The notes below the pieces were generated by a model. It was not told the origin of the DNA. It saw nothing but the letters and a program-made list of their open reading frames with translations, and did not search any database. Shown piece by piece: positions 16,535 to 63,056 of a DNA stretch of 64,000 bases. The stretch is taken from positions 62,001 to 126,000 of the IMG/VR virus record IMGVR_UViG_3300023174_000045; one strand, written 5' to 3'. Position 1 is the first letter of the stretch. Each line of letters starts with the position of its first letter. A program made the position numbers and the translations under genes.

Positions 16535-16854
16535 TGAATTTACAACCAGCGGCCATTAGTAAACTGCAAGAACTTGTTGCTGAAGAAGGCAATCCCAACT
16601 TGATGTTGCGTGTGTTTGTGCAGGGCGGCGGATGTTCGGGATTTCAATATGGCTTTACATTTGACGAAGCACAAAACGAAGATGACTTTGACTTTGTTTA
16701 CGACTCAGTGAAAGTTGTAGTGGATGCCATGAGCATGCAATACTTACAAGACTCTGCAATTGATTACCGAGAAGATGCCATGGGCGCCAGCTTTGTGATC
16801 AACAATCCACAAGCAGTCAGCACCTGTGGATGTGGTTCAAGTTTTTCAGTCTAA
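16531..16854 (+). CDS. erpA: iron-sulfur cluster insertion protein (ErpA/IscA, HesB family)
   Basis: [20 protein letters not shown] ... TCGCGSSF. Confidence 0.92.
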
Positions 16855-19551: not shown

Positions 19552-19557
19552 TGCGCT

Positions 19558-21318: not shown

Positions 21319-21337
21319 TGATCACTCCGATTGCTAC

Positions 21338-21368
21338 TATTTAGCGGTACACAACGTTTTGGTAAATA
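21338..21368. promoter_or_regulatory. back-to-back TAAATA late promoters
   Basis: TATTTA at 21338 (minus) and TAAATA at 21363 (plus) between divergent fibre genes. Confidence 0.7.
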
Positions 21369-21387
21369 CTCAACTGGAACACTAAAC

Positions 21388-23691: not shown

Positions 23692-23697
23692 TTTAAT

Positions 23698-39560: not shown

Positions 39561-40175
39561 ATGGAATTAACAATCAGTCAATTAAAACAAATGGTACCTG
39601 GCATACCCCATGCTGAGCATTGGTATGAAGCCTTGGACCAACTGTTGCCTGACTATGAAATCAACACACCCCATCGCATTGCTGCCTTCATAGCACAGTG
39701 CGCACATGAATCAGGCGGTTTTAAATTCATCAAAGAGAACTTGAACTACAAAGCAGAAAGTCTGCGCAAAATATTTGGCAAGTATTTTCCCACAGACGAA
39801 TTAGCACAGGCCTATGCCAAAAAACCTGAAATGATTGCCAACAGAATCTATGCCAACCGCATGGGCAATGGCGACGAACACTCTGGCGATGGATATCGCT
39901 ACTGTGGACGTGGACTTATCCAGTTAACTGGCCGGAGCAACTATGAAAACTTTGCTGCCAGTTTGGAAATCTCACCAGAAGAAGCTGCCGAATACTTGGC
40001 CACATTTGAAGGTGCCGCACAAAGCGCCTGCTGGTTCTGGGAAAGCAACAATCTAAATGCAGAAGCCGATGCTGGCGACATCAAGAAAATGACCAAGAAA
40101 ATCAATGGCGGTTTTATTGGATTAGAGGATCGTATCAAGCACTACGAACACGCATTACACATTATGGGAGCCTAA
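39561..40175 (+). CDS. GH19 endolysin
   Basis: RIAAFIAQCAHES, ENLNY, GRGLIQLTGR.NY, TKKINGG..GL.DR. Confidence 0.92.
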   Translation: MELTISQLKQMVPGIPHAEHWYEALDQLLPDYEINTPHRIAAFIAQCAHESGGFKFIKENLNYKAESLRKIFGKYFPTDELAQAYAKKPEMIANRIYANRMGNGDEHSGDGYRYCGRGLIQLTGRSNYENFAASLEISPEEAAEYLATFEGAAQSACWFWESNNLNAEADAGDIKKMTKKINGGFIGLEDRIKHYEHALHIMGA

Positions 40176-40176
40176 C

Positions 40177-40716
40177 ATGGCACAAGCAGAAACAAAACCC
40201 TTATCACGTTCAGAACGTGAAGCAGCAATCAAAGACAAAGCAGGCTTAGTGATTGTGATCATGGCCCTGTTCATGGCTGTGACAACTTACTTTTCAAACA
40301 GTTACTCAGGTGCTGTGCTGAAAAACATGCTCAAAGCCACAGACACCTATGCTTTTTATCAAAGCAAAAGTATCAAGCAAAGCATTGCTGAAGGACAACT
40401 GGAACAAACTCAAAACCCTCAACGCCGAGCAGAACTTGAAGCCAAGATTGCTCGCTACGAAAGTGACCCTGCCAAAGGCGAAGGCAAGAAAGAATTGTTG
40501 GCCAAGGCACAGGCCTACGAAGCCGCACGTGATGAGGCTACCCGTCATAGTCCATGGTTGACGTTTGCGTCATTGGCATTTCAACTGGCCATTGTGCTGT
40601 TGAGTGCCAGCATTTTGAGTGTGAACAACACCATGTACCGTATCAGTGAAGTGGTGGCTGTGATTGGCACAGTGTTGTTGAGCCAGGGCATCTGGTTATG
40701 GATACCAGGAGTATAA
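40177..40716 (+). CDS. membrane protein, DUF4337-like
   Basis: TM - YQSKSIKQ coiled region - two TMs. Confidence 0.6.
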   Translation: MAQAETKPLSRSEREAAIKDKAGLVIVIMALFMAVTTYFSNSYSGAVLKNMLKATDTYAFYQSKSIKQSIAEGQLEQTQNPQRRAELEAKIARYESDPAKGEGKKELLAKAQAYEAARDEATRHSPWLTFASLAFQLAIVLLSASILSVNNTMYRISEVVAVIGTVLLSQGIWLWIPGV

Positions 40717-40717
40717 T

Positions 40718-41470
40718 ATGGCATTACCAGGAATAAAAATTGAAGGCGGAATCAGCATTGGCGGCGGTATTTTTATGGGCACTGGCACACCGCCAACACC
40801 GCCCACTACAGGCAGTGTGTTGTTTAACTCCACACCTTCGCAATATCTTTCAGTACCTAACAATGCGGCATTTACACAAAATCAACCGTTCACTATTGAA
40901 ACATGGTTCTACCCAACCGATATCACTGGTGGTTATATTTGGGCAATGCTACAGCCTAACTTTTTGACTGTGGCCTATAGAAGCAGTGGTAAATTTCAGA
41001 TTGACATGAGTTATGTTGGTCTTCCACCAGGTTACTCTACGCTAGACACTACATACCCAATCAACAACTGGTATCACATAGCACTAACATGGGACGGCGC
41101 TATAGGATGTTTGTGGATCAACGGCGGCCAAGAGTCTCAATTTTCTGGTGCGGGCGCAACTGTAGCAGGCGGCAATCCATTCCTTATTGGACAATACCAA
41201 GGTCAAGGTCAACCAACACCCTTGGGCAACTTGTCAAACTTCCGTGTGGTCAAGGGAGTGGCAGTTTACACAGGCCCATTTACTGTGCCCACAGCACCGC
41301 TTGCAACCACACAGAGTGCAGGCACAAACATCTCGGCCATTACAGGTACACAAACTCAACTGTTGTTGAACACTATAAATGATGGAAGCTTCTTGACAGA
41401 CACTTCAGCTAACGCATTTACTGTCACAAACAATGGCAGTGTGACAAGTGCCGCACTAAATCCATTCTAA
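40718..41470 (+). CDS. ConA-like lectin/LamG domain virion protein
   Basis: FTIETWFYP, WYHIALT, LWING, G.LSNFRVVKGVAVY. Confidence 0.8.
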   Translation: MALPGIKIEGGISIGGGIFMGTGTPPTPPTTGSVLFNSTPSQYLSVPNNAAFTQNQPFTIETWFYPTDITGGYIWAMLQPNFLTVAYRSSGKFQIDMSYVGLPPGYSTLDTTYPINNWYHIALTWDGAIGCLWINGGQESQFSGAGATVAGGNPFLIGQYQGQGQPTPLGNLSNFRVVKGVAVYTGPFTVPTAPLATTQSAGTNISAITGTQTQLLLNTINDGSFLTDTSANAFTVTNNGSVTSAALNPF

Positions 41471-44449: not shown

Positions 44450-46702
44450 ATGCAAAACAATCCCGAAATTGAACACATTGTAGATCAAGCAGTGAAAATT
44501 GCTCGAGACAAACATCACGAATATGTCATAACTGAACACTTGTTGTTGAGTCTGATCAGGCATGCACCGTTCCGTAAAACCTTGGACAATTTTGGTGTGG
44601 AAGTTGATCAAATGGATCAAGAGGTTGATGTGTATCTTGACAGTTTGAAAAACTTGGTCAAGCCCGGTGAAGAAGTGCAACCACGCAAAACACAAACCTT
44701 GGAACGCCTGTTCAATCGTGCCAATGTGCAGGTCATGTTCACAGGACGCAGAACACTGACCACCTTGGATTTGTACTTGAGCATCATGGCCGAAACCAAC
44801 AGCCATGCACACTACTTCTTGCTGAAATATGGCGTGAAGAAAACTGAGTTTTCAGAATTCTACGGCAAAAATTATCATGCCGGTGAAACCAAAATGAATC
44901 CAGTGCAGGCCAACGAAATACTCACTGAGTACTGCACCAACTTGACAGCCTTGGCACAAGCAGACAAACTGGAACCCTTGATCGGGCGTCAAACAGAACT
45001 GCACGAAATGATCACTGTGATGGCTCGACGCTTCAAGGCCAATGTGCTCATGGTAGGCGATCCTGGCGTAGGCAAGACCTGCATTGTGGACGGCTTGGCA
45101 CAGGAAATTGTGGCTGGACGTGTGCCCAAGTTCATACAAAATCATGAAGTATGGGGACTAGAAGTTGGAAGTTTGCTGGCAGGATCAAAGTACCGCGGGG
45201 AGTTTGAAGAAAAATTCAAGGCTGTGATTGCTGCCTTGGAAACCAAAAAAAACTGTATCCTGTTCATTGACGAAGCACACACCATGAAAGGTGCCGGTGC
45301 CGGAAGCCAAAGTTCATTAGACTTTGCCAACATGCTAAAGCCTGCAATCACCAAAGGCAACTTGAAAGTGATTGCGTCAACAACATGGGAAGAGTATTAC
45401 GAATCATTCGAAAAGGATCGTGCGTTGATGCGCAGGTTCTATCGTATTTCAATTGATGAGCCAGATACAGAAACCACAGAAAAGATTCTCATTGGCCTAA
45501 GCCCAAGACTGGAAAAGTTCCATGATGTGCTAATTGACACAGAAGCAATGATGGCTGCTGTGGAACTGGCCAATCGCTACATACACGATCGTAAAAATCC
45601 TGACAAAGCCATTGACTTGTTGGATGCAAGTTGCGCACGTGAACGTGTGAAAGATCAAGGTACCATCACAGTCACCAAAGAAATGATTCAAGCACAGGTG
45701 TCACGTGTGGCAGGTGTGCCTGTGGATCGCTTGCAAAATGAACGATCGGCAAAGATTGTGGATTTGGAAAGCAATATCAAACAGAAGTTATACGGACAGG
45801 ATAGTGCTGTGGATGCGGTGTTAGAACGTGTGTACATCAACTTTGCCGGCATTGGCAATGCCCGACGTCCTATCTCAAGTTTCTTGTTCTTAGGCCCAAC
45901 AGGTACAGGTAAAACTGAACTGGCCAAACTGTTGAGTGACAACTTGGAAATGAAACTGTTGCGATATGACATGAGTGAGTATCAGGAAAAGCACACAGTA
46001 TCAAGCCTGATTGGTGCGCCTCCTGGTTATGTGGGCTTTGAAGATGGCAACATAGGCGGTGGTAAACTGATCAGTGACATCAGCAAGAATCCCTATGCTA
46101 TCATCTTGTTTGACGAGATTGAAAAAGCACACAGTGATGTCACCAACATCCTGTTGCAAATGCTGGACGAAGGACACATTACGTCAGCCAATGGCAAACG
46201 AGTAGACGTCAAGAACTGCATCATTATCATGACGTCCAACTTGGGGGCTCAAGCCAATGATGCCAACAACATTGGCTTTGGTAGCCTGGAAAAGACCGGT
46301 GAAGAAGATCGTGCCATGAAAGAGTTCTTCCGTCCAGAACTGCGCAATCGTATTGATCGTATCTGCAAGTTCAACAAACTAGACACATTGGCCATCAAGA
46401 AAATTGTGGTGAAGTTTGTGGATGAACTCAAAGCCAGCATGACTGACAAGAACATTCGTCTAGTATTGACTGAGCCTGTGATTGACCACTTGGCTGACAA
46501 AGGCTACGACAGCAAAATGGGCGCACGTCCTTTATCACGCAAGATCGACGAGTTGATCCGTGTTCCACTCAGCAAAAAGATCTTGTTTGATCGACTAGAA
46601 AACTGCGTGATCACAGCAGTGATGGCAACGGATGTTGTGGAATTTGAAATTGAACTAGACAAAGTGAGCACGGTAAATGCCGACGGAATCATTGTTGTAT
46701 AA
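44450..46702 (+). CDS. clpA: ATP-dependent Clp protease ATP-binding subunit (ClpA-like)
   Basis: Clp N domain; GDPGVGKT, LFIDEAH; GPTGTGKTE, DMSEYQEKH, GAPPGYVG, FRPE..NR, GARPL. Confidence 0.92.
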   Translation: MQNNPEIEHIVDQAVKIARDKHHEYVITEHLLLSLIRHAPFRKTLDNFGVEVDQMDQEVDVYLDSLKNLVKPGEEVQPRKTQTLERLFNRANVQVMFTGRRTLTTLDLYLSIMAETNSHAHYFLLKYGVKKTEFSEFYGKNYHAGETKMNPVQANEILTEYCTNLTALAQADKLEPLIGRQTELHEMITVMARRFKANVLMVGDPGVGKTCIVDGLAQEIVAGRVPKFIQNHEVWGLEVGSLLAGSKYRGEFEEKFKAVIAALETKKNCILFIDEAHTMKGAGAGSQSSLDFANMLKPAITKGNLKVIASTTWEEYYESFEKDRALMRRFYRISIDEPDTETTEKILIGLSPRLEKFHDVLIDTEAMMAAVELANRYIHDRKNPDKAIDLLDASCARERVKDQGTITVTKEMIQAQVSRVAGVPVDRLQNERSAKIVDLESNIKQKLYGQDSAVDAVLERVYINFAGIGNARRPISSFLFLGPTGTGKTELAKLLSDNLEMKLLRYDMSEYQEKHTVSSLIGAPPGYVGFEDGNIGGGKLISDISKNPYAIILFDEIEKAHSDVTNILLQMLDEGHITSANGKRVDVKNCIIIMTSNLGAQANDANNIGFGSLEKTGEEDRAMKEFFRPELRNRIDRICKFNKLDTLAIKKIVVKFVDELKASMTDKNIRLVLTEPVIDHLADKGYDSKMGARPLSRKIDELIRVPLSKKILFDRLENCVITAVMATDVVEFEIELDKVSTVNADGIIVV

Positions 46703-48371: not shown

Positions 48372-49418
48372 ATGAAACAAGTTGTTATTATGCCCGGTGG
48401 CTTTCACCCTTTTCACGCAGGACACGCTGAGTTATATCAATCAGCGAAAAAAGCCTTTCCTGGCGCTGACGTGTATGTGGCTGCTACCAACGACACCAGC
48501 AACAGACCTTTCCCCTTTGCACTGAAAGAAAAACTGGCACAGTTGGCCGGAATCCCTGCAGGCCGATTTGTACAAGTCAAGTCACCGTTTGGTGCAGAAG
48601 AAATAACCAGCCGATACGATCCAGAAACCACACAGTTGATCTTTGTCAAGAGTGAAAAAAACAGCCGATCAGGTCCCAGCCCCGAAGGTCCTTTTCCAGC
48701 AGAGCCTGATCCTGCAACAGGCCAATTGCCCTTGGTCACTAGAGGAGCCAGAAAAGGCTTGCCTGTGAGTGATCGATTACAATATTATCAACCAGGTCAG
48801 CCAATGGCGCCCATGAGTCAACACTCTTATCTTGCTTATTTGCCCACTGTGGAATTTGGCCCTGGTATGACATCAGGGTCCGAAATACGCACAGCATGGC
48901 CAAAATTAAATGAAAAACGTAAAACTGCGCTGATAATGAGCTTGTATCCAAAGACACAAGCCAACCCCAAGTTAGCCGCCAATGTTGTGCAAATGCTGGA
49001 CAATGCCATGGGCACAGTGGACGAAGACATCAGCCGCAGAGGATTTTTACGTGGTGCAGGTGCTGCCGCTGGCATGGCTGCCGCAGGCGCTGTGGGTGCA
49101 AAAGAACTTGCCCGGCCAACAATCATAGCCATTGTACGAATTGGCGATCAGACAAAACAATTCAACCTTGGTACTAAATTTGATACTTCAAAACAAGCAG
49201 AAGATTTTGTTGCCAATTTTCTAGACAAACAAGGCATACAAGGATACACCATTGAAATACAACGTGGTTATACCAACGAAAATCAAGGCTGGGCTGCCAC
49301 ATATGAAGCAGACGGACTCACTGCCGGAACCGGTGTCACAGGTGGCATGCATGCCACATACCAAGATCGATACAATCAACCCACTACAGAAGACTATGTG
49401 GAAGAACGTCGGTCGTAA
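48372..49418 (+). CDS. cytidylyltransferase-like (HxGH) protein with C-terminal modules including an internal Tat-like signal
   Basis: MPGGFHPFHAGH, TSGSEIR; VDE-DISRRGFLRG. Confidence 0.7.
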   Translation: MKQVVIMPGGFHPFHAGHAELYQSAKKAFPGADVYVAATNDTSNRPFPFALKEKLAQLAGIPAGRFVQVKSPFGAEEITSRYDPETTQLIFVKSEKNSRSGPSPEGPFPAEPDPATGQLPLVTRGARKGLPVSDRLQYYQPGQPMAPMSQHSYLAYLPTVEFGPGMTSGSEIRTAWPKLNEKRKTALIMSLYPKTQANPKLAANVVQMLDNAMGTVDEDISRRGFLRGAGAAAGMAAAGAVGAKELARPTIIAIVRIGDQTKQFNLGTKFDTSKQAEDFVANFLDKQGIQGYTIEIQRGYTNENQGWAATYEADGLTAGTGVTGGMHATYQDRYNQPTTEDYVEERRS

Positions 49419-50405: not shown

Positions 50406-53400
50406 ATGAATATTCATGAGTTGGACTCTTACAATCTTGGCGACGCAGTAAAGTTTCACCGCCGTCTCAATCCCAGAATCTGGGGGCGAGACGAGCATTT
50501 ACTGCCAGAAGTGCGCAACAAACTGCTGGCCATTGCCGCAGACTTTCAAGAATTCTTGGGTGTTGATAATCTCAACGTTGAAGATATCACCATATCAGGC
50601 TCCAACGCAGCCTACTCCTACACAAAAAACTCAGACATTGATCTACACCTTGTTGTAGCAATGCCCGACAATCCTGTGTATCAGGAATTGTTTAATGCTA
50701 AAAAATATCAATACAACGACGAGCACAACATAAAAATTGGCGGTGCTGATGTGGAATTGTATGTGCAACCTGCGGATCAAGCACACCACAGTCAAGGCAT
50801 TTACTCAATCAAAGATTCGGAATGGCGTCAGATACCACAACGCAAACGTGCGCAGATAGATGATTCTTGTGTGCGTGACAAAACAGCTGACTTGGATGCT
50901 AGAATACACGCCGCAATCAAAAGTCGAAATTTAGAATCCATTAGCACACTGTGGGACAAGATCAAAGCCATGCGCAAAAGCGGACTTGAACAGCACGGTG
51001 AATTTGGTTGCGAAAATATCTCTTTCAAACTGTTGCGCAACAAGGGCTGTATTGGTGCGCTAAAAGATGCAATGATGTCCGAAAAAGATCGTGAACTCAG
51101 TTTGCGTGAAGCACCTGCAACGCCATTTCGTTATGGCTATGGTTCTGAAGTTGACGAAGCCAGTTTGGCAGACATGCGAGCTGCCTTTGCCGCAGATGCC
51201 AAACCACAAAAACAAGAAGTATTTCACAGTCATGATGAATACGAAAAAGTTCGAAAACAACGCGAAGCTGAACGCGAAGAAAAAATCAAACAAATAGCAA
51301 GAAAACCAATGAAGCCGTGGTCGGGAGGCTTGGAAGAAGGCCATCAAGGTCAACCTTACAGTAGTGAAGATGGTGTTGCTGCCAGTACCAAAATGTTCTG
51401 TGAAGACAATGATGACACCCTGGTACACGACTTTATTCAACACACTGCCATGGAACTGGGCATTGATCCCATGCCCGAAATTGTGTTGCACACTGATCCT
51501 GAATGGAGCACCAACAATCACAGTTTTGGCCGCTATGACCCCGAAAGCCACACACTCAACGTCAGCATGCCCAATCGTCACATCCTGGATGTGTTGCGTA
51601 CTGTGGCACATGAACTGGTACACTGCTCACAAAATCAACAGCATGGCAACTTGCCTCCAAATGCAGGCGAAACTGGTAGTCGCTGGGAAAATGATGCCAA
51701 TGCCCGAGCTGGCATAATCATGCGTGACTGGGCCAACACACATCCTGAACACTTTGAATTGCCCCCACTGGACGAAAGTGCGTCAGGATACATTCCTAAA
51801 AATAAAAAAGAAGCAGCCATGCCACAGTATGCCATGGCCTTGAGCGTGGATATCAAGCCAGGACAGACTGGCAAAGAAGCCAACAAGCTGGCATTGCAAA
51901 CAGGCCGCAATGGCGAGCCAGGCTTGTTGATGAAAACTGTGAACTTGCGTGAGTATAAGATGCCACAGCCCAGTCAAGGTCCTGGACGATATAGAGACTT
52001 GAATGAACCACTGGGTCCAGAGACTCCGCCCGAAATGCCAGATGGCACAATCAAAGTAGATGTATCGGACATGTACGACTGGTACAAACTGGGTCAAAAG
52101 ATATCAGACTTAGGCAGTATCAAACCTGGTGAACTAGGGTCAGGTCCTCCAAGTACAGTGTTTGCATTTGGCTCAGAAGATTTAGAAAACATGTACAGTC
52201 ATGAACTCACAAAACTGGGTTTAAAAACACACGACTTGGATGAGCCTGGCGAAGAAGACATTGACGAGAGTGCAAGCGATTACCAAATACACAACACTGA
52301 GAAACTGGATCGTGTGCTGGCCAAGTGTTGTGCTATGATTGAGCGAGGGCAACAAACGGATCCTGAGCGTTACGGTATGGTTGCTGCCTGTGTGATTGAT
52401 CCTGACAATAAACAGGTGTACGGCATCAACTTACCCGGCACTGATGGCACACGCAGACATGCTGAACGTGTGGCCATCAACAAGTACCGCAAGCAGCACG
52501 GTGACATTCCTAAAGGCAGCATTGTGGTCACGACACTGAGTCCCTGCAATAGCCCCATGGATGAACGTGCAGGCGAGAGTTGCAAAGACTTACTAAACAG
52601 TGCGGGCATACACAAAGTGTATTGTGGTTACATTGACCCCACACAGCACGATGATGAGGATGCTGACTTTGTTACAGGTGTCACACAAAATGACGACTTG
52701 TGGGACAGTTGCAAAGCATTTGCCGACACATTCTTACATGAAGATGACTTAGAAGAAGGAATAAAGTCTGCATTGGCCACTGCGGCTTTGGCAGGAACAA
52801 TGGCCATGGGGGCTCAAGCAAAAGCACCAACTATGGTTCAACAAATCGTCGAGCCTGGTGATACAATTTACAGCATAGCAAGACAAACTGGTGCAGATCC
52901 CAAAGAGATATACAAACTCAACAAGATGGATCGTAATACCAAGCTAGAGATAGGACAAAAGGTTCTGGTACCCGATTATGCTAGGCCTATTAGTAAAATG
53001 CCTGCCTCTGTAACACCCACAGTCAAACAAGAACCTGTAAAAGTGGCACCTCCTGCACCAACATTAAAAGATAAAATCTCATCAATGCTACCTAAATTTC
53101 CAGATGATGACGAAGGTGTTGTATTATTGAGCGACAATCCTGACGCAGAAGCCGCGCTACAAACTGCTGCCAAAGCCGCAGGACTTAAAGGTTCTGAACT
53201 GGCACAGTTCATGGCACAGACCCGACACGAAAGTGCAAACTTTGCACACATGAAAGAAATTGGCACTAAGAAAAAATTTGATCATTATGAAAAAAATCGT
53301 ACTCTAGCAAGACGATTAGGCAATACAGTCAAAGGTGATGGAGAAAGATTTAAAGGCCGTGGGTTCATTCAGTTGACCGGACGTGACAACTATACCAGAG

Positions 53401-53630
53401 CCAGCCAACAAATCTTTGGCGATGACCGACTGGTAAGAAATCCTGACTTGGCCAGCAAGTTGGATGTGGCAGCAAAAGTTGCACTGTGGTATTGGAAAAA
53501 TCAAGTTAGGCCCAAAGTCAATGATTTTAACAATACCACACAAGTTGTCAAAGCAATCAATGCTGACGAACCAATGAATGTTGTAAAACAACGTCACAAC
53601 AAATTCAAAGAATATTTGGCGGTGTTATGA
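50406..53630 (+). CDS. five-enzyme mosaic protein: nucleotidyltransferase, zincin, deaminase, LysM, GH19
   Basis: GSNA...SDIDLH; AHELVH..E; HAE...TLSPC...C; VEPGDTIYSIA...L.IGQKVLVP; FMAQT.HES...GRGFIQLTGRDNY. Confidence 0.85.
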   Translation: MNIHELDSYNLGDAVKFHRRLNPRIWGRDEHLLPEVRNKLLAIAADFQEFLGVDNLNVEDITISGSNAAYSYTKNSDIDLHLVVAMPDNPVYQELFNAKKYQYNDEHNIKIGGADVELYVQPADQAHHSQGIYSIKDSEWRQIPQRKRAQIDDSCVRDKTADLDARIHAAIKSRNLESISTLWDKIKAMRKSGLEQHGEFGCENISFKLLRNKGCIGALKDAMMSEKDRELSLREAPATPFRYGYGSEVDEASLADMRAAFAADAKPQKQEVFHSHDEYEKVRKQREAEREEKIKQIARKPMKPWSGGLEEGHQGQPYSSEDGVAASTKMFCEDNDDTLVHDFIQHTAMELGIDPMPEIVLHTDPEWSTNNHSFGRYDPESHTLNVSMPNRHILDVLRTVAHELVHCSQNQQHGNLPPNAGETGSRWENDANARAGIIMRDWANTHPEHFELPPLDESASGYIPKNKKEAAMPQYAMALSVDIKPGQTGKEANKLALQTGRNGEPGLLMKTVNLREYKMPQPSQGPGRYRDLNEPLGPETPPEMPDGTIKVDVSDMYDWYKLGQKISDLGSIKPGELGSGPPSTVFAFGSEDLENMYSHELTKLGLKTHDLDEPGEEDIDESASDYQIHNTEKLDRVLAKCCAMIERGQQTDPERYGMVAACVIDPDNKQVYGINLPGTDGTRRHAERVAINKYRKQHGDIPKGSIVVTTLSPCNSPMDERAGESCKDLLNSAGIHKVYCGYIDPTQHDDEDADFVTGVTQNDDLWDSCKAFADTFLHEDDLEEGIKSALATAALAGTMAMGAQAKAPTMVQQIVEPGDTIYSIARQTGADPKEIYKLNKMDRNTKLEIGQKVLVPDYARPISKMPASVTPTVKQEPVKVAPPAPTLKDKISSMLPKFPDDDEGVVLLSDNPDAEAALQTAAKAAGLKGSELAQFMAQTRHESANFAHMKEIGTKKKFDHYEKNRTLARRLGNTVKGDGERFKGRGFIQLTGRDNYTRASQQIFGDDRLVRNPDLASKLDVAAKVALWYWKNQVRPKVNDFNNTTQVVKAINADEPMNVVKQRHNKFKEYLAVL

Positions 53631-54934
53631 GAGCACATGAATTTCTATACAAAAAACCTCTTGATGAAGATGTTGAGAATTTTCCCATTGCCAACGTGCG
53701 CAGACCCAACGGTGCCATTGGTAACCAAGGTGTCAACACCGAACAAGCAGCAGATGTGTTGACTCATGCTGCCGGCATGCAGGTATCGCCAGACATGACC
53801 ATGCGTCAAATGGTGGATGCACTACGAGCAGATCCTGCGGCACAACAACGACTGAGACAATTTGTACAACAAAACCCTGTGACAGTGTATGCACTGCCAG
53901 ATGGTTCATATCATTTGCAAGATGGACATCACAGAACATTTTTGCTGAACTTGCTGGGTGATGAAACAGTGCCAGCCATAGTCAAAGAAGATGTCAAGGA
54001 AGCCAACACTGTGGAGTTTGAAGGGTTGACTTTGAAAGTAATCAAAAGCGGACATGAGTTAGTAGTTGATGCCCTTGATGACTGGGGTAACAAGGTACTA
54101 GGACATGTACGATTCAACATAGGCGACAACAAAGAATTGGATCCGCAAGATCTCTCTGTGGATGAGAAATATCAAGGCCAAGGTATTGCCCGTGTCATGT
54201 ATGATTATATCAAAAGCCAGGGCTATACCATTGTTAGAAGTTGGGATCAAACTGATGCAGGCGCAGGCTTTTGGAACAAGCATCGCGGAGAAGATGTTCG
54301 AGTTTGGGAAACCTTTGACAACCCTTACAAGGGCACGTGGGAAAAAAGCGATTATGGTGACGTTGATCTAAACACAAAATTACCAGACGGCACATATCTC
54401 AACATCATGTTCAATCAAGAATATGACGGAGAAGGCGACGAAGTCGTTCAAGTTGAATTCCACAGAAACAACAGCCAAGAAGTCACGGGCGAGGGCGATG
54501 CACAGCGTATCTTTGCCACAGTGTTGGATGCTATACAAAAATACATTAAAAAATACAAACCCGAAAGACTAAGTTTCTCAGCAAGCAAATCAGTGGACAT
54601 GGACGCAGACGATGTTGAACACTTCAATCCAGAAAGCCGTGCCAAGTTATACACCAGACTGGTACAACGATATGCTGGCACCTGGGGTTATCAGGCTCAG
54701 GTCAGCGACGAAGGCGATGTGGTTATATATCAACTGACTAGAACCATAGCAGAAAACTTTGCAGACGGTAAAAATCCCGGCCGCAAAGGACTCAGTAAGC
54801 GCATGGGTGTGAACACCAAGGCCAGTGTTAGTAGTTTGCGCAACACAGCCAAACATTCATCAGGTGAGAAACAACGCATGGCCCACTGGCTGGCCAACAT
54901 GAAAGCTGGTAGAGCAAAGGCACGAAGAAAATGA
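53627..54934 (+). CDS. mosaic protein: ParB-like, GNAT, unknown domain, basic C-terminal module
   Basis: LQDGHHR; VDEKYQGQGIA..MY..QT.AG..FW. Confidence 0.75.
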   Translation: MRAHEFLYKKPLDEDVENFPIANVRRPNGAIGNQGVNTEQAADVLTHAAGMQVSPDMTMRQMVDALRADPAAQQRLRQFVQQNPVTVYALPDGSYHLQDGHHRTFLLNLLGDETVPAIVKEDVKEANTVEFEGLTLKVIKSGHELVVDALDDWGNKVLGHVRFNIGDNKELDPQDLSVDEKYQGQGIARVMYDYIKSQGYTIVRSWDQTDAGAGFWNKHRGEDVRVWETFDNPYKGTWEKSDYGDVDLNTKLPDGTYLNIMFNQEYDGEGDEVVQVEFHRNNSQEVTGEGDAQRIFATVLDAIQKYIKKYKPERLSFSASKSVDMDADDVEHFNPESRAKLYTRLVQRYAGTWGYQAQVSDEGDVVIYQLTRTIAENFADGKNPGRKGLSKRMGVNTKASVSSLRNTAKHSSGEKQRMAHWLANMKAGRAKARRK

Positions 54935-56094
54935 AAATACGACAAATTGTAGAAGCCGCTGAACGTGGCAAAACACTGGGCGGATTCCCCATCAAAGTAT
55001 TGCATGTGGAACACGGTGCCACAGACGAAGCACTCAAACTGGATGCACCACAACAGTCTTGGAGCAACCAAGACATGCAAGACTACTTGAGTCGTGTTAA
55101 AACTGGTACCAAGACCAAAGCCGACAAGTTCCGACCCATCATACACGGCAGCAATGTCAAAGCCATTACCAAAGATGACGGTGGTACAGAATGGGATTTG
55201 GATGATTTAAAAAGTCAGATCATGCAGCCGCCAAGACAGATCTTGGGTACCAATGCCAAAATGGCCAAGAGCAAACAAGAAGGCGCCATCACATATGACC
55301 TAACACTGCCGGCATTGAGTGGCATTGTGGTGGATGAAGACACAGGCGAATTTGTGGAAGTGATAACCTGCCCTGGTGCTGGCGAGTGCCAAACCTACTG
55401 CTATGCTAGAAAAGGTGGTTATGTGATGTTCCCAGCCAGTTCAATGAGTGCGGCACAGGCCTTGAACTTCTTGGTCAACCACCCTTCGGACTACATGGAG
55501 AAGTTTGACGGCGAAGTCAAAAAAGCCGCTGCATTAGCCAGCAAAAACGGCATCAAGTTGTTGGTGCGCATACATGATGCTGGCGACTTCTTCTCCAAAG
55601 AATACTACAATCTCATGATGGATGTGGCCAAGAACAATCCAGATGTAAAGTTCTATTTCTACACCAAGATGGGACAAATAGTAACAGACCCTGACACACC
55701 CGACAACGTGGTCAAACAGTTCTCACCTGGCGCCAAGAGTCGTGAAGTCAAAACAGTTCAACTGCAACGTGATGCTGGCAAACATGTCAAAGACGCGGTG
55801 ACATTGCCCAAGGACATGTTCCGTGATTTGTTTGTGACAGATGCCAAGGGCAAGTATGTCAAGGACGAAAAGGGACGTACACAGGTTCGCAGTCCCCAGG
55901 CGTGGCAACAGTTCCGTCAAGAACTGGGCGCAAAATACAACATTGACCCCGACACTGTGATCACATACGATGAAATGAACCGCATACCCGAAGGCCCTGC
56001 ACCCAAATGGAACGTTGTAGTGTTTCCTGCAGGGCATGGAGACCTAGGCGCCAGCAGACTGGACGTGGCAAACCAATTCTTGATGTTCCACTAA
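54931..56094 (+). CDS. GP88-like Cys-cluster protein
   Basis: N.KM, LPA, TCPGAGECQTYCYA.KG, RIHDAGDF, YFYTK. Confidence 0.7.
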   Translation: MKIRQIVEAAERGKTLGGFPIKVLHVEHGATDEALKLDAPQQSWSNQDMQDYLSRVKTGTKTKADKFRPIIHGSNVKAITKDDGGTEWDLDDLKSQIMQPPRQILGTNAKMAKSKQEGAITYDLTLPALSGIVVDEDTGEFVEVITCPGAGECQTYCYARKGGYVMFPASSMSAAQALNFLVNHPSDYMEKFDGEVKKAAALASKNGIKLLVRIHDAGDFFSKEYYNLMMDVAKNNPDVKFYFYTKMGQIVTDPDTPDNVVKQFSPGAKSREVKTVQLQRDAGKHVKDAVTLPKDMFRDLFVTDAKGKYVKDEKGRTQVRSPQAWQQFRQELGAKYNIDPDTVITYDEMNRIPEGPAPKWNVVVFPAGHGDLGASRLDVANQFLMFH

Positions 56095-56104
56095 ATATAT
56101 TATC

Positions 56105-57229
56105 ATGAATTTATACGACCTGTTCAACGAAGAAAAAGTGCGCCTTGACCCCAAGTGCTGGAAGGGCAAAAAGATTGGCAATCCCAAGACCAAGATGAAG
56201 GGCGGCGTGCGTGTAAACAACTGTGTGCCTGCTGAGAGCATAGCAGAAAATGCCGGGCAACCACTCACAGTTCAACAATTGGCCGCCATCAGTGATGAGG
56301 CCTTGGATCAAGCATATGGGTATGGACGTAGTACACCCAGCAACAACTTTGGCTGGCAAGCCAATTTGAAGTCAGCTGCCTATGCCAAGCAAATGATTGA
56401 TCAGGGTGTGACAGACATTGAAGCCATCAGTGATGCTATTCACAAAGGATGGAACACTACTGCACAGGCATTTGTACAAGATCCTGAACAGTTTGATGAC
56501 ACAGCAAAACTGGCAGCAGCCGGCAAACTAGAAGCCAAACTTCAACAGCGAGCACAGTTGATGAAACAAAATTATGCTCAGTTACCTGAAGAAGAAAAAG
56601 AAAAAGACCGTGTGGTTGCACGAGCACTGTTACAGGCCATTCGTGGATCACAACAACCAGATGTGGCAGAAGGCGTGATGTACGGTGCAGAAAACTTGCA
56701 CGTAGGCGACGATGTGATCATTAGTGGCGATGTCAATCTCAAAGGTGCCACTGGCGTGATTGACAGCTTTGGCCAAGACAAACGTTTTGTTGTTGTCAAC
56801 CTGTACAATCATGGCAAGCACAGTTTCCACTCTAGTGATGTCAGCATCAACGACCATGATAATGATGAACACGATGACGATGTACTGGATGAAAAGTCTG
56901 TGAGCCAAGCACAGTTCCGTACCATGGCAGCGGCTGCACACAATCCCAAGTTTGCCAAGAAAGTTGGCATCAGTCAAGATGTTGCCAAAGAGTTTCACTC
57001 AGCAGACAAGCACAGCAATTACAAAAAGTTACCAGATCGTACCACTGAAGGCGAGCAACAAAAGGGTGCAGACTATCGTGACCCTAAGGAAGTTGACTAC
57101 GATGACGAATACGATGCCATGGTTGCCAGAGTTAAAAAGTTAGCCGGACTGGGCCCTATGCGAACTGTGTACGATCCCGCCAAGCGACAATATCGCAACA
57201 TGCCCACAGCAGTGCAGCCTAAAAAATGA
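56105..57229 (+). CDS. mosaic protein with RyR-like and KOW-like modules
   Basis: CWKG...NCVP module; AIHKGW...YAQLPEEEKEKDR; VGDDVIISG..KGATGVI. Confidence 0.65.
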   Translation: MNLYDLFNEEKVRLDPKCWKGKKIGNPKTKMKGGVRVNNCVPAESIAENAGQPLTVQQLAAISDEALDQAYGYGRSTPSNNFGWQANLKSAAYAKQMIDQGVTDIEAISDAIHKGWNTTAQAFVQDPEQFDDTAKLAAAGKLEAKLQQRAQLMKQNYAQLPEEEKEKDRVVARALLQAIRGSQQPDVAEGVMYGAENLHVGDDVIISGDVNLKGATGVIDSFGQDKRFVVVNLYNHGKHSFHSSDVSINDHDNDEHDDDVLDEKSVSQAQFRTMAAAAHNPKFAKKVGISQDVAKEFHSADKHSNYKKLPDRTTEGEQQKGADYRDPKEVDYDDEYDAMVARVKKLAGLGPMRTVYDPAKRQYRNMPTAVQPKK

Positions 57230-57723
57230 GAGCCCAAGAGTTTGTTGCTGAAGGCAAACAACCTGGAAAGCCAGTGGTTGATGCCATACAGAAAGTATTA
57301 CCCATGGCACAAGAAATATGGTTTCATGGTAGTCGTGCCACAGGTCGGCATCGTAGAAATAGCGACACTGACATCTTGGTGGTTGTGCCTGACAACCTTG
57401 TGGGTGATCAGTATCTTGCGGTGGTAAGAATACTACAAAAACTTGCTTCTCACTTTGACAACTATGACATACAGCCTACCAAGTCAGGCACTAACATACA
57501 TCGTATAGCACAAGAAGAAGGTCGATTGTTATGGTCCAGCAAGCTAGGTGTGGCAGAAGAACAACTAGACGAACTCAGTTTCCTAGGATCAGAATGCACC
57601 AAAGACTGTTCAGGACATCGCGCTGGATATGAGTGGTCAAAACGCAAGGGCCTGCGTCAAGCCAACAGCCTGTACAGTCCCAGTTTCAACAAAGGTGCCG
57701 CCTTGGCAGTGGCCGGCAAATAG
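57226..57723 (+). CDS. minimal nucleotidyltransferase (MNT-like) with a Cys module
   Basis: IWFHGSRATG...SDTDILVV...DI; CTKDCSGHRAGY.W. Confidence 0.75.
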   Translation: MRAQEFVAEGKQPGKPVVDAIQKVLPMAQEIWFHGSRATGRHRRNSDTDILVVVPDNLVGDQYLAVVRILQKLASHFDNYDIQPTKSGTNIHRIAQEEGRLLWSSKLGVAEEQLDELSFLGSECTKDCSGHRAGYEWSKRKGLRQANSLYSPSFNKGAALAVAGK

Positions 57724-59612: not shown

Positions 59613-62600
59613 ATGATCACAAGCGATTTATTCACCAACAACTCATCTGCCTTGTTTGAAAACACAGGCCCAGTCACACACCGCGTTGGTCTCACAGTGA
59701 CTGACCCCAACCACCCCATGGTTTCAAAGCGTGGCGAAACTATTCAAAAGACTGTGCGTGTCAAAGGTGACGACCGTGAAAAAGCCATCAACGGTGCCAT
59801 TGCACACCTTCGCCGCAAAGGTTACAAAGTACATGACCATCACTATATTGGCACAGTGGATCAAGGTGTGTCAGAAGGTCAGTTGGAATTAAACACACCA
59901 GATCCTGTTGTAGTGGTACAAGATCAACAAGGTAAAATTCTAGATAAAATAAATTTATCAGTGGCTGCACAAAAATACAAATTGGGTCAACCACAAAACA
60001 TAAAGAATCAGTTGGCGCATCAAAATTATACCAAAATTGGTAGTTACACCATAGTATCTCCCATGAGCGGGCAGCCACAAGATCAAACAACCACTGGACA
60101 GAAAACTACGTTTGCCACGCCTGGCGTGGTGGAAGATATGCCACATGGTCAAGACATAAATGATCCGTTAGACCCTAGCTACGGTGGTAACCGCAATCGT
60201 TCAGTCAAGCAGAATATCCAAGCCCGTTTAGGTCACGATGAACGTGGTGATGCAAGAGAGCGAGCTGGTCAACCACGCAGTACTCATGCACGACACAAAC
60301 CACAACTGCCAGAAAGTTCAATGGATGACGATGCTATTTGGCGTCAATATGGACAGTATAACGCACAAGACTTGATGCAGGAATTTCCAAATCTAAATCC
60401 CAAGGATGCACAGACCATAGTAAATTACGCCGAGTATGGTTGGTCATCTTCCAATCCACAAAAATTTAGAAATGAAGTGGTACAGCGAGTTAAAATGGCC
60501 ATGGGTCAACAAGGTGTGAACGAAGTCAGCCTAGGTGACTATCGTAAAAAAGCACAACTAAGTCAAGCAGGTGCCAAGATAAACAAGTTCTTTGACCGTG
60601 ACGATCCTGCAGCGGTTGCCGCTGCTGATCAAACCATTGCCAAGCGAGAAAAGGGCCTGGCACGTGCTGATGCTAGAATCAAGCCATACACACCTCCTGC
60701 ACAAGATGCTGAAAAACACCAACGTGATTTAACCGCCAAGTATCCCAACATTGACGAATTAGTGGCCGCAGCCGAACAGCGCCGTGACCCCAATTACGAC
60801 TACGCCGAAGGTGATGCTTATTATCGTGGCCGCGAAGCTGAACAAAACTATCAAAAATTAAAACAAATCCAACGTGTGATTCAAGGCTTAAATGAATCTT
60901 GTGCCGCAGTAAAAAAAAATTATCTGTATGAAGGCCTAGACCGTGACAGCGTGAACACAGTCAAGCTGTGGGAAAGTGCTGGCCAACGCATTGTGGAAGC
61001 CCAACTCACAGTTGATCAAATCAATCAATTGTTCAAATCCGCAGAACAAGACGCTACTGCTGCTGGTGGCAACAGAACCATGGTTGGCAAGGGCAAAGAC
61101 GCTGCTGTAGCAGTCAACCGAGCCTGGGAAGATTTAAAGACCAAGGTACAAAATTCTGGTCCTATCAAGAGTGTGGATGCTGCCTATGATTCGGCAGCAG
61201 AAAAATTAAAACAAGCCACTGGTGGTGACCAGGGCGTGATGAAGTACGTGCAAAAGTATCGTGACTTTGCCAAGGCACATCCTGTGGCACAGAGTTTGAT
61301 TTACTCGGCCTTGATTGCTGCCGCAGGTATTTCAGGAGCTGGTGTAGGTGGGGCCGCTGCCTTAGGTCTGTTCAAACTTGTGGACAAACTGTTGCAAGGT
61401 GAAAAGTTCTCCAGTGCCGCCTACTCAGGTGCTAAGACTGGCGCAATGGCCTATGGGGCCAGCAAGGTTGCTGACTACTTTAGAGGACCACAAACACCGC
61501 AAGGTGGCGGTGGTCTTGATCCCAAGGATCCTGATGTTGCAGCATTCCGACGAGATGTAGCCGACATGCGTGGGTACGATAATTACATGACTAAAAATCC
61601 CACATCATCGTTGAGTCCAGAACAGTATGCGGCAAAAATAGGCAAAGCTTCTGCATTGACACCAGATGGTTCTGGATTGACATCGCAGGCCAGCATGATG
61701 AATAATATTGCCAGCAAAATGGGATTGCCACCCGGTGCTCACCAAGCAACATTCCAAGGCGGTGTACCAGTGACCATAGATGGCAAAGCTGTACCATTGA
61801 ATTTGTTGTCAGGAGATCAGCAAAGAAATATCGAAGCCGCTCGTGCTATGCGACAGGCTATGTCCGGATCACAGTCTCTTGCTCAGAAAGCGGCCGCTGC
61901 TGCCGCCGCAGCGGACAAAACTTATGAATCACTCAATGTTCATACCAGTCACAAATTAACTGATGCAGACTTGTATTTCATATTCAGTGCCGCCACACAA
62001 CTCAACGAAGGCATCTGGGACAGCATCAAAGGCACTGCCGGCAAGGCTGCTGGCAAGGCTGCTGACTGGGCCAAAACACAGGGTACCAATCTCACCACCA
62101 AAGTCACTGCTGACAAATTAAAGAGTGCATGGCTCAAGGCTGGTTCACCCACAGACAGTGACCAAGTTTACAATGTGATGACTCAGGCCGGGGTGGCACC
62201 ACAAATATTAGACACTGTGTACAAGACCATGGGCGTCCCCACGTTCAAAGAAAAAGCCCTAGCAAGACCAACAACACCTGCTTTTTCAAGCGCACCAATA
62301 CCTGCTGGACCAGCATCTAAATCAGCAGCAGCCGCTGGGTCAGCACCAGCGACTACAACGCCAGCAAGTCCTGAAGTCACGCCTAACGCCGCTACACCAG
62401 CAACAGCCGATGCCCCCAAGACAAAACAGTTGGGCACTGGTACTGGTCGTATCAATCCTGCCACTGGACGACCCTGGACTCCTAGCGAGCTCAAAGCCAA
62501 GTATGCGCAACCACAGTCAACAGCGCCCACACCAGACTCAGAGCCACCTGCACCAGAACTTACTTCGCCAGAGCCTGCTTTAAAATCTAGCCCAACCGCA

Positions 62601-63056
62601 CCGCAAAGCCCTGAAGAAATTAGAAAAGCCAAACAATCAGCTGCTGCTCTTGCTGCACAACAGGCCATGGGAGATGTTGCTTCACCAGCACCTGCACCTA
62701 CTGTGGCGTCTACCCCGGCTCCAGCATCATCTGCCGCGCCTTCGGGTCCTCCTGGATTCAATGCTGGCAACTTGGCACAACTTCCCGGTATGGCACAATA
62801 CATGCAACAAAAGCCGGCTGCGGCCAAACCTGCACCCAATTTTGCTCGAGGACCTGCTGCATATGGAAAGACCACAATGAATGTTGGACCAACTGCAACC
62901 AAACCAACAGCCACAGCAGCACCAGCTGGCAAAAAGCCCACTGCACAACAGCAACAAGAATATTATAAATCTTTGGGATTGGCAGAGTCTCTGACCTGGA
63001 GCCAAAATTTTGATCCTGGACGCAGTCTGTATCGTAGAATGAAACAGGATATTTAA
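59613..63056 (+). CDS. large modular protein with hydrophobic central segment and Pro/Ala-rich tail
   Basis: 1147 aa; QGVSE, QGVNE, GLNE, QLNE, GLAE linkers. Confidence 0.7.
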   Translation: MITSDLFTNNSSALFENTGPVTHRVGLTVTDPNHPMVSKRGETIQKTVRVKGDDREKAINGAIAHLRRKGYKVHDHHYIGTVDQGVSEGQLELNTPDPVVVVQDQQGKILDKINLSVAAQKYKLGQPQNIKNQLAHQNYTKIGSYTIVSPMSGQPQDQTTTGQKTTFATPGVVEDMPHGQDINDPLDPSYGGNRNRSVKQNIQARLGHDERGDARERAGQPRSTHARHKPQLPESSMDDDAIWRQYGQYNAQDLMQEFPNLNPKDAQTIVNYAEYGWSSSNPQKFRNEVVQRVKMAMGQQGVNEVSLGDYRKKAQLSQAGAKINKFFDRDDPAAVAAADQTIAKREKGLARADARIKPYTPPAQDAEKHQRDLTAKYPNIDELVAAAEQRRDPNYDYAEGDAYYRGREAEQNYQKLKQIQRVIQGLNESCAAVKKNYLYEGLDRDSVNTVKLWESAGQRIVEAQLTVDQINQLFKSAEQDATAAGGNRTMVGKGKDAAVAVNRAWEDLKTKVQNSGPIKSVDAAYDSAAEKLKQATGGDQGVMKYVQKYRDFAKAHPVAQSLIYSALIAAAGISGAGVGGAAALGLFKLVDKLLQGEKFSSAAYSGAKTGAMAYGASKVADYFRGPQTPQGGGGLDPKDPDVAAFRRDVADMRGYDNYMTKNPTSSLSPEQYAAKIGKASALTPDGSGLTSQASMMNNIASKMGLPPGAHQATFQGGVPVTIDGKAVPLNLLSGDQQRNIEAARAMRQAMSGSQSLAQKAAAAAAAADKTYESLNVHTSHKLTDADLYFIFSAATQLNEGIWDSIKGTAGKAAGKAADWAKTQGTNLTTKVTADKLKSAWLKAGSPTDSDQVYNVMTQAGVAPQILDTVYKTMGVPTFKEKALARPTTPAFSSAPIPAGPASKSAAAAGSAPATTTPASPEVTPNAATPATADAPKTKQLGTGTGRINPATGRPWTPSELKAKYAQPQSTAPTPDSEPPAPELTSPEPALKSSPTAPQSPEEIRKAKQSAAALAAQQAMGDVASPAPAPTVASTPAPASSAAPSGPPGFNAGNLAQLPGMAQYMQQKPAAAKPAPNFARGPAAYGKTTMNVGPTATKPTATAAPAGKKPTAQQQQEYYKSLGLAESLTWSQNFDPGRSLYRRMKQDI

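Follow-up and report, generated by a model that had tools for sequence, protein, structure and literature searches.

We analysed a 64,000-nucleotide stretch of an uncultured virus (the window; positions 62,001 to 126,000 of IMG/VR virus record IMGVR_UViG_3300023174_000045) and find that its open reading frame (ORF) at 50406–53630, on the plus strand, very probably encodes a polyvalent, modular multi-effector protein, built on a head of a nucleotidyltransferase (NTase) and a zincin metallopeptidase that is constant among related phages. We think it probable that the chain is cut at hydrophobic-x-Glu sites, as judged from their placement at module borders; that a prohead protease does the cutting in the capsid and that injection follows is a more tentative proposal. 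The sequence of events as a whole, in which an effector polyprotein is cut, takes the prohead route, is ejected and is exported in part, we hold to be about evenly balanced between right and wrong.

Modules of the polyvalent ORF

The ORF runs uninterrupted from ATG to TGA over 1074 residues, and its stop codon shares the ATGA at 53627–53630 with the start codon of the next ORF. All of its modules lie on the plus strand. Module 1 (residues 1–235, 50406–51110), the constant head, is a Pol-beta-fold NTase with a helical C-terminal half that ends at L233-R-E235-A; it is followed by an optional insert or linker, helical and Lys/Glu-rich (residues 236–311, 51111–51338), which is bracketed by V-D-E251-A and L-E-E311-G. 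Module 2, the zincin metallopeptidase (residues 312–457, 51339–51776), carries H402-E-x-x-H406 and E428 and ends at L-D-E457-S, and next comes a conserved 58-residue peptide (residues 458–516, 51777–51953) that starts with SASGYIP and ends at L-R-E516-Y. Module C, of ~105 residues (517–621, 51954–52268), ends at L-D-E613-P and I-D-E621-S and leads into module D, a zinc-dependent RibD-like deaminase (residues 622–784, 52269–52757) with H685-A-E687, P713-C714 and C726, ending at L-E-E784-G. A signal-peptide-like segment (residues 785–807, 52758–52826) lies directly after L-E-E784, and the chain is completed by a LysM peptidoglycan-binding domain recognized by Pfam (residues 815–856, 52848–52973) and a GH19 glycoside hydrolase of the phage endolysin/chitinase type (residues 906–1074, 53121–53627) with H941-E942, E951 and F-K-G-R-G-F-I-Q-L-T-G-R-D-N-Y. 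This confirms the original prediction of one ORF with unrelated domains (NTase, zincin, deaminase, LysM and GH19), and the motif positions given there are exact, with HELVH from nucleotide 51609 and HAE from nucleotide 52458, then PC...C. The two small modules of no recognized kind that it had counted do exist, but are better described as three pieces, residues 236–311, 458–516 and 517–621.

Pfam matches above the curated cut-offs are obtained for Glyco_hydro_19 (residues 927–1042; PF00182, 40.9 bits, cut-off 25.5), LysM (815–856) and dCMP_cyt_deam_1 (634–741; PF00383, 39.7 bits, cut-off 25), while NTP_transf_2 is sub-threshold over residues 56–106 and the zincin region yields a weak DUF6055 match only. 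Residues 14–233 match the uncharacterised PHROG 36119 (3e-41), and the C-terminus matches endolysin PHROGs, among them PHROG 181 at 1e-30. Searched by sequence against the PDB, the NTase and zincin regions by themselves gave no significant match. An AlphaFold2 model of residues 1–520 contains two confident domains with a predicted local distance difference test score (pLDDT) above 90, the zincin reaching 94–98. The NTase fold matches ANT(9)/AadA, CD-NTases and minimal MNT-type NTases (Foldseek probability 0.95–0.98; VIA-align), and the zincin fold matches SprT/Wss1/Spartan, minigluzincins and anthrax lethal factor 4dv8 (Foldseek and VIA-align; VIA Z-scores 7.3–9.0). The best solved match of the deaminase is the RibD deaminase 2hxv, with the same long PC-x(n)-C spacing, which suggests a RibD-like rather than a tRNA-deaminase-like enzyme; confidence of the full-length model is low at residues 622–784, where the predicted deaminase fold gets no confirmation. 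Module C gives no fold or feature match, with low model confidence, no lead in a protein-atlas search (scores ≤0.69) and no detectable relatives outside the family of the polyprotein itself. The 58-residue peptide could belong to the zincin, as its propeptide or as an extension of its C-terminus.

The catalytic motifs are intact, as had been proposed, and the residues that form them are conserved across relatives. In an alignment of 73 diverse relatives, G65, S66, D77, D79 and E117 of the NTase are invariant and make up the Pol-beta NTase set of G-S, D-x-D and a third carboxylate; in the same 73 sequences the zincin residues H402, E403, H406 and E428, which are the HExxH and the downstream Glu of gluzincins, are ≥90% conserved. 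The HAE, PC and C of the deaminase are invariant in 26/26 deaminase-bearing relatives, and H941, E942 and E951 of GH19, of which we take E942 and E951 to be the catalytic Glu residues, are invariant together with the GRG..Q..NY signature in all 65 relatives that bear this module.

A word-indexed protein search found more than 1400 relatives, on contigs of up to 360 kb, and an exhaustive profile-free search with residues 1–520 gave 5167 representatives of 50%-identity clusters, of which 939 matched at E ≤1e-30; head-matching representatives range from ~400 to 2288 residues in length. Module counts, here and below, come from mapping the query segments on the 120 closest protein clusters, which resolve into ~75 distinct architectures when gaps are binned by length. 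The head is nearly always retained, with the zincin in 120/120, the NTase in 118/120 and the 58-residue peptide in 118/120, and the remainder varies: module C is found in 80/120, GH19 in 65/120, an amidoligase block in 65/120, a basic C-terminal tail in 45/120 and the deaminase in 26/120. The helical insert between NTase and zincin is present in 38/120 and missing as one block in all the others. Parts of the relatives that do not match the query contain, by Pfam, Amidoligase_2, GNAT, NUDIX, a second Pol-beta NTase, DUF6934 and an internal TAT_signal, to which precomputed annotations add ParB. The family of the NTase head is virus-only, and its members occur solo or N-terminal to a Zeta toxin, an M23 peptidase, NUDIX or a cytidylyltransferase-PAP2 pair. 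Module content thus varies between orthologues in the comparison that the original prediction had proposed; the NTase-zincin head is constant and the cargo modules are exchanged between related phages. The view that no single pathway uses this combination is borne out, as is the view that the domains are unrelated and intact. Among cultured phages, a near-identity DNA search gave no match and a protein search gave single-module matches only, none covering more than 22% of the query. In the cultured Flavobacterium phage vB_FspM_immuto, a homologue of 907 residues consists of an NTase, a cytidylyltransferase-like domain, a zincin and a second HExxH, in this order.

By architecture, the product of the ORF belongs with the polyvalent proteins described by Iyer et al. 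in 2017 (PMC5512222), which are encoded by phages and conjugative elements and combine 2–15 domains of disparate activity. Their commonest hub is a zincin-like metallopeptidase, tied to anthrax lethal factor 4dv8; peptidoglycan hydrolases are frequent, nucleotide-directed enzymes, GNAT and ParB-like nucleases are also present, and the phage genes mostly lie near late genes (PMC5512222). Such proteins are predicted to enter the new host with the DNA, the metallopeptidase processing them (PMC5512222). Because this category, a recognized strategy of phages against their hosts, has already been described, the puzzling combination of domains is explained. The likeness extends to phage origin (an IMG/VR virus contig with polymerase, tail-fibre and baseplate-like genes), at least two unrelated activities (NTase, zincin peptidase, deaminase, LysM, GH19), a zincin hub whose fold matches the same lethal factor template, a peptidoglycan hydrolase, nucleotide-directed enzymes, GNAT and ParB-like domains, and modules that recur solo or recombined, in variable architectures and in separate neighbouring ORFs. 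The differences are that the RibD-like deaminase, GH19, LysM, amidoligase and internal export signals go unmentioned in PMC5512222; that the Pol-beta NTases of the known polyvalent proteins are minimal, belong to firmicute conjugative elements and are fused to ArdC-N (PMC5512222), whereas here a two-part NTase of a virus-only family is the constant N-terminus; and that the present gene is not beside virion genes and has junctions that bear a prohead-protease-type motif. A 2021 survey of jumbo phages by the group of Iyer et al. reports SprT-like metallopeptidases in T4-like ‘group 2.2’ jumbo phages and does not describe the present family. The earlier idea that the NTase and the deaminase might modify tRNA or nucleotides, or counter nucleotide signalling, is compatible with what has been proposed for polyvalent proteins (PMC5512222).

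Hydrophobic-x-Glu sites and export-signal-like segments

All six [LIVM]-x-E-[SAG] matches of the main protein are intermodular, after E235, E251, E311, E457, E621 and E784, and two further border sites, L-R-E516-Y and L-D-E613-P, make eight in all. Model pLDDT falls below 50 at residues 242–247, 301–332, 454–461 and 511–520, the same places as the candidate sites. Relatives are near-identical up to N-L-R-E516 and then continue into at least five unrelated modules, and in one relative (P0053) the deaminase is joined directly after the A-L-R-E that ends the zincin. Homology breakpoints of the query cluster at 516/517 (67 events), 612, 621–625 and 777–787, and [LIVMF]-x-E is found in 77% of 357 distinct hot junction windows compared with 29% of size-matched random windows. 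No enrichment of this kind is seen for the control motifs, in junction vs random windows (hydrophobic-x-Asp, 26 vs 37%; x-Lys, 23 vs 21%; x-Gln, 28 vs 28%; polar-x-Glu, 20 vs 20%), and the junction signal is therefore not merely one of acidic linkers. Two downstream ORFs that had played no part in forming the idea of the sites behave in the same way: the only such sites of dn1 (V-K-E126-A and I-A-E377-N) and of dn3 (I-A-E49-N and V-A-E190-G) are the borders of their pieces, defined as pieces found separately in other loci by tblastn. At E235, 73 diverse sequences have Leu or Ile at P3 in all 73, a variable P2 and Glu at P1 in 70, and sites E457 and E516 follow the same pattern more weakly. The immuto homologue has L-A-E-A, V-K-E-G and M-A-E-G between its domains. 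An exact D-E-S-A-S repeat, which occurs twice in the query, was considered and set aside, as it is not conserved as such, only its hydrophobic-x-Glu core being so.

A second feature of the borders is the placement of export-signal-like segments. L-E-E784 is followed by G-I-K, a 16-residue stretch of Ala, Gly, Leu, Thr and Met, Q-A, K-A-P and then LysM and GH19, so that the segment at residues 785–807 has a short Lys-bearing n-region, a 16-residue Ala/Gly/Leu-rich h-region and then A-Q-A-K. A hydrophobic stretch of at least 13 residues precedes GH19 in 65/65 GH19-bearing relatives, with [LIVMF]-x-E at most 8 residues before that stretch in every case (65/65, against a background of 10%), a basic residue (Lys or Arg) separating the two in 62/65 and small-x-small at the end of the stretch in 58/65, and the arrangement is independent of the upstream module, be it the deaminase, module C or one of at least three others. 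Eight relatives have a Tat-like S/T-R-R-x-F-[VL] with an Ala/Gly-rich stretch, in each case just after [IVM]-x-E-D (8/8), and Pfam TAT_signal scores 20–22 bits on these segments (cut-off 22.7). Signal segments of this kind function at a free N-terminus only, and for that reason their fixed place after a site is the strongest indirect argument for cutting; by the same indirect argument, some of the fragments would act in the periplasm. In signal-peptide and signal-anchor-release (SAR) endolysins, a muramidase-type enzyme follows an Ala/Gly-rich segment of weak hydrophobicity with a small-x-small site, as is also seen here before GH19. Their signal stands at the true N-terminus of a separate gene, unlike the present one, which is internal, lies 784 residues into the chain and would function after cleavage only.

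Candidate proteases, packaging and competing explanations

The source record is a 225-kb IMG/VR virus record with a completeness estimate of 65%. The phage is an uncultured T4-like jumbo myovirus of fresh water, judging by the identity of its polymerase, together with gp21 and gp23 in near-complete relatives. A T4-type family B DNA polymerase lies directly downstream of the window in the same record; it shares 86% identity with the polymerase of G002, whose 364-kb genome is complete and has terminal repeats, and 79–80% with those of two other ~345 kb genomes. Peptidase_S77, the family of T4 gp21, is found (E ~1e-23) in four of the five near-complete relatives with a homologue of the ORF (G001, G002, G004 and G005), and a capsid protein of T4 gp23 type is encoded by these four as well (E ~1e-97); a further relative shares the capsid protein at 94% identity. 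gp21 is also above cut-off in 3/3 cultured phages that carry NTase or zincin homologues, and all family-carrying genomes checked, one excepted, are T4-like with gp21. The gp21 gene of the relatives precedes one for a 364-residue coiled-coil-like protein, a putative scaffold in which [LIVM]-x-E occurs 24 times; the capsid gene comes next, and three copies of the motif lie within the first 42 residues of the capsid protein. This order of gp21, site-rich putative scaffold and capsid gene is the T4 pattern.

T4 gp21 cuts after Glu in L/I-x-E, where Asp blocks processing, and its substrates include IPI-III and the ADP-ribosyltransferase Alt, which are packed via a short N-terminal targeting sequence, trimmed and ejected (PMC9026906); the authors of that review suggest that T4-like phages pack varied proteins by the targeting-sequence route (PMC9026906). 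The main protein offers eight such sites in predicted exposed positions, in linkers predicted to be disordered, and the junction enrichment is specific to hydrophobic-x-Glu. The prohead protease is the leading candidate because the junction motif equals gp21 specificity and relatives encode gp21, and with gp21 as the candidate protease, capsid packaging and injection come as part of the proposal. T4 Alt and IPI-III resemble the present protein in having L/I-x-E sites and in coming from a T4-like lineage whose members encode gp21, and among the effectors that T4 packages one is an enzyme (Alt) and another an anti-restriction factor (IPI); they differ in being single-function proteins that lose short terminal propeptides, whereas the present chain is predicted to yield ~6–8 pieces. 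The giant phages phiKZ, 201phi2-1 and SPN3US also cut head-internal proteins, of which they have many, after Glu of a three-residue motif, by a gp21-related protease, and eject them (PMC9026906), but their motif is S/A-x-E and not L/I-x-E, their proteins are mostly non-enzymatic structural or ejection proteins, and we find no sequence relationship to them. P1 DdrB/DarB and the N4 virion RNA polymerase are large virion-delivered proteins with a zincin metallopeptidase, and P1 DdrB is proteolytically processed before packaging (PMC5512222); for the present protein delivery is a prediction, the domain sets of the P1 and N4 proteins (methylase-helicase, ParB, RNA polymerase) and their phage groups are different, and no homology is detected beyond the zincin fold.

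In the mechanism that we propose, the chain would be cut after the border Glu residues into NTase, zincin, small peptide, module C, deaminase and a signal-LysM-GH19 fragment, most likely by a T4 gp21-type prohead protease of L/I-x-E specificity, with the embedded zincin as an alternative or additional processing enzyme. The protein would reside in the prohead core and, as happens with T4 Alt and the internal proteins, enter the cell together with the ejected DNA. The freed LysM-GH19 fragment, now with an N-terminal Sec-type signal, could reach the peptidoglycan; in the cytoplasm, the targets of NTase and deaminase would be nucleotides, nucleic acids or host proteins, with the effect of aiding take-over or blunting defence. 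A stronger form of the proposal, in which the polyprotein is hypervariable and packed in the capsid, the prohead protease cuts L/I/V-x-E linkers, and some fragments thereby gain Sec or Tat signals and are re-exported to the periplasm after ejection, is in our judgment unlikely to hold in full. We rate just as low its further extension, that the linker motif of this packaged polyprotein doubles as a joint for module exchange.

A joining of unrelated genes by misassembly or faulty gene calling has in its favour that the source is a metagenome-assembled, incomplete record; the stretch is, however, present in public lake, river and freshwater metagenome runs, and exact unitigs of even depth (42–54) tile the ORF and cross every module border in one of them (X1, which may be the source sample and hence not independent). 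A run of a second study (X2) covers the same borders, and contigs of other sources share each joint, one relative (P0004) being full-length and colinear at 71% identity, so that the chimera of which the original prediction had warned has a practically negligible chance of being the explanation. Contigs of the same samples follow the window and then diverge at nucleotides 52258–52267, the border before the deaminase, and at 51886, and therefore represent co-existing variants that differ from these points onward. That the chain is one uncleaved multifunctional enzyme, its domains cooperating on one substrate or pathway, would agree with intact domains in one reading frame, but the linkers are predicted to be disordered and the activities belong to different compartments, cytoplasmic nucleotides versus periplasmic peptidoglycan. 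The same modules are fused in some loci and separate or absent in others, across ~75 architectures in 120 relatives and not the invariant one to be expected of a single enzyme; there is therefore no invariant single enzyme, and we consider this explanation very improbable. An elaborate lysis protein, in which signal-LysM-GH19 is a secreted or signal-anchored endolysin that the upstream modules regulate or delay, has in its favour that GH19 and LysM give the strongest family matches, with endolysin PHROGs among them, and that the signal-like segment precedes GH19 in 65/65. It is nevertheless improbable in view of the 55/120 relatives that retain the head and lack GH19, the strict conservation of the catalytic residues of NTase, zincin and deaminase, which a mere regulatory appendage would not need, and a separate, signal-less GH19 of 204 residues at 39561–40175. 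The latter is a more ordinary endolysin candidate, and lies on the plus strand in a lysis-like region (39561–41470), followed by a DUF4337 protein and a concanavalin/laminin-G-like protein.

The closest competitor keeps the polyprotein and dispenses with packaging: the protein would be made from an early or middle block, and the constant zincin would cut it in cis and its neighbours in trans, the products staying in the cytoplasm or leaving by Sec/Tat export. We think this possible, if rather unlikely. The zincin is present in 120/120 relatives with H-E-x-x-H and the downstream E intact, metallopeptidases are predicted to process polyvalent proteins (PMC5512222), the fold resembles self-cleaving SprT/Wss1 proteases and minigluzincin zymogens, the gene stands in a replication-type context co-oriented with the DNA polymerase, and Tat export requires a folded cytoplasmic precursor. 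On the other hand, the junction motif is the known specificity of T4 gp21, down to the exclusion of Asp at P1, and all but one of the family-carrying genomes checked are T4-like with gp21. Early export of a muramidase would be risky for the phage. We know of no zincin with hydrophobic-x-Glu specificity.

Several observations weigh against cutting, packaging and injection by the prohead route. The phage is uncultured, and cleavage, packaging and injection are all read from sequence. The ORF lies outside any virion-gene block, adjoining replication genes and thus not near late or virion genes as most phage polyvalent genes are; it shares a strand with the DNA polymerase, ~10 kb upstream of it, and solo NTase homologues in cyanophages S-CRM01 and DSL-LC02 lie near primase, clamp loader and polymerase and carry no virion annotation. 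Since T4 internal-protein genes also lie outside the head cluster, this non-late context weakens packaging without excluding it. gp21 and gp23 were not found in the ~65% complete record of the window itself, and presumably lie in its missing third. One relative with the polyvalent gene (G003, locus L039; 342,865 bp, completeness rated 99%), whose DNA polymerase is 79% identical, gives no gp21 or gp23 match by Pfam profile or protein query. Hydrophobic-x-Glu is a short motif, and its density in the ORF (5.6 vs 4.0 per 1000 residues in the genome) is no excess, position alone being unusual; L-x-E235 ends a conserved helix, and its conservation may be structural; the junction statistics are built on related sequences with fuzzy BLAST ends; and the signal-like segments could instead be membrane anchors. 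Inter-domain contacts are unreadable in the full-length AlphaFold2 model (mean pLDDT 54, predicted template modelling score 0.28).

The virus-only NTase-zincin head family, the set of modules, and the junction motif with its Sec/Tat-like signals were not found in the literature searched and appear to be new. The family is very large, with 5167 50%-identity clusters matching the head, and goes unannotated, as ‘putative chitinase’ or ‘hypothetical protein’; it offers a test of the 2017 prediction that polyvalent proteins are processed (PMC5512222). If cleavage and routing are as we propose, giant ORFs of this kind could be read by a simple rule, cut at hydrophobic-x-Glu, and would supply a catalogue of modules for counter-defence screens (NTases, RibD-like deaminase, amidoligase, NUDIX, GNAT and ParB-like nuclease). 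Export signals that become active only after proteolysis would be a new principle, one of protease-unmasked, compartment-specific targeting of injected phage effectors, and the T4 internal-protein idea would be extended from small single proteins to multi-enzyme chains.

Neighbouring ORFs and genome setting

The ORFs downstream of the polyvalent gene belong to the same pool of shuffling modules. The start of dn1 (53627–54934, plus strand) overlaps the stop of the main ORF (ATGA), and its 435-residue product is itself polyvalent, with a ParB-like nuclease, GNAT, DUF6934 and a strongly basic 58-residue C-terminal tail; that tail terminates the main polyvalent protein in 45/120 relatives. Modules of dn1 are fused to the main protein in relatives, as at locus L011, where the ParB-like piece comes directly after residue 516. 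Three further plus-strand ORFs of the same variable island follow (dn2, dn3 and dn4; 54931–57723). The product of dn2 is of the GP88 family, and that of dn4 (57226–57723) is a minimal Pol-beta NTase, which relatives P0078 and P0079 carry as a fused part of the main protein. Residues 265–334 of dn3 (56105–57229) form a C-terminal motif that matches the extreme N-termini of PHROG ‘virion structural protein’ families (E 1e-9 to 7e-17), the sole hint within the island of a possible virion association.

Four consecutive ORFs begin with M-N-I-H-E-L (main), M-R-A-H-E-F (dn1), M-K-I-R-Q-I-V-E-A (dn2) and M-N-L-Y-D-L (dn3). A pattern drawn from these four N-termini fits 1 other among 251 ORFs, a circular test. 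The capsid-targeting sequence of T4 is M-K-T-Y-Q-E-F-I-A-E (PMC8442874), which the N-termini of the main ORF and dn2 recall only loosely, and we regard the shared pattern as a suggestive lead to a targeting sequence and no more.

On the upstream side, the order of Lon-like protease, cytidylyltransferase-like gene, glycosyltransferase-like gene and polyvalent ORF is kept in 49 IMG/VR loci. The Lon-like ATP-dependent protease (44450–46702, plus strand; 750 residues, PHROG 4871, E 4e-237) precedes the polyvalent gene by four genes in almost every one of these loci. A 348-residue ORF at 48372–49418 (plus strand) starts with a cytidylyltransferase-like domain that bears a motif of the H-x-G-H type and has, in mid-protein, a Tat-like segment (D-I-S-R-R-G-F-L-R-G and an Ala/Gly-rich stretch, residues 219–243) after T-V-D-E; its C-terminal part of ~100 residues varies among relatives, which retain residues 1–215.

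The T4 late-promoter consensus TATAAATA has one copy in the window, which is the chance level, and a scan for generic sigma-70 promoters and terminators found sites no more frequent than in shuffles. An enriched upstream word, TAAATAC, resembles the T4 late-promoter core and stands 5 nucleotides before the ATG of the polyvalent ORF and also before its two upstream neighbours. It has 24 copies in the 225 kb, 18 of them at most 150 nucleotides upstream of a same-strand gene and some only 5 nucleotides before the ATG; examples in the window are at 21363, 48360, 49445, 50394, 57754 and 63449. The word cannot separate early from late genes, because the DNA polymerase gene and metabolic genes, namely those for radical-SAM proteins and GTP cyclohydrolase, have it upstream too.

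Elsewhere in the window, 16846–27558 holds minus-strand tail-fibre genes, for a 586-residue protein with many tail-fibre PHROG matches and a 901-residue virion protein, followed by plus-strand ORFs of 767 and 1286 residues, one with a weak head-closure/baseplate-hub-like match. No PHROG or Pfam match is obtained for a 1147-residue ORF (59613–63056, plus strand) situated after the variable island and before the DNA polymerase. Outside the window, the record carries at least four radical-SAM-domain proteins in a cluster (record positions 203085–212171, minus strand, and 154768–156183, plus strand) and a GTP cyclohydrolase (136025–136765), which together point to a pathway that modifies nucleotides or cofactors, such as one of the 7-deazaguanine type.

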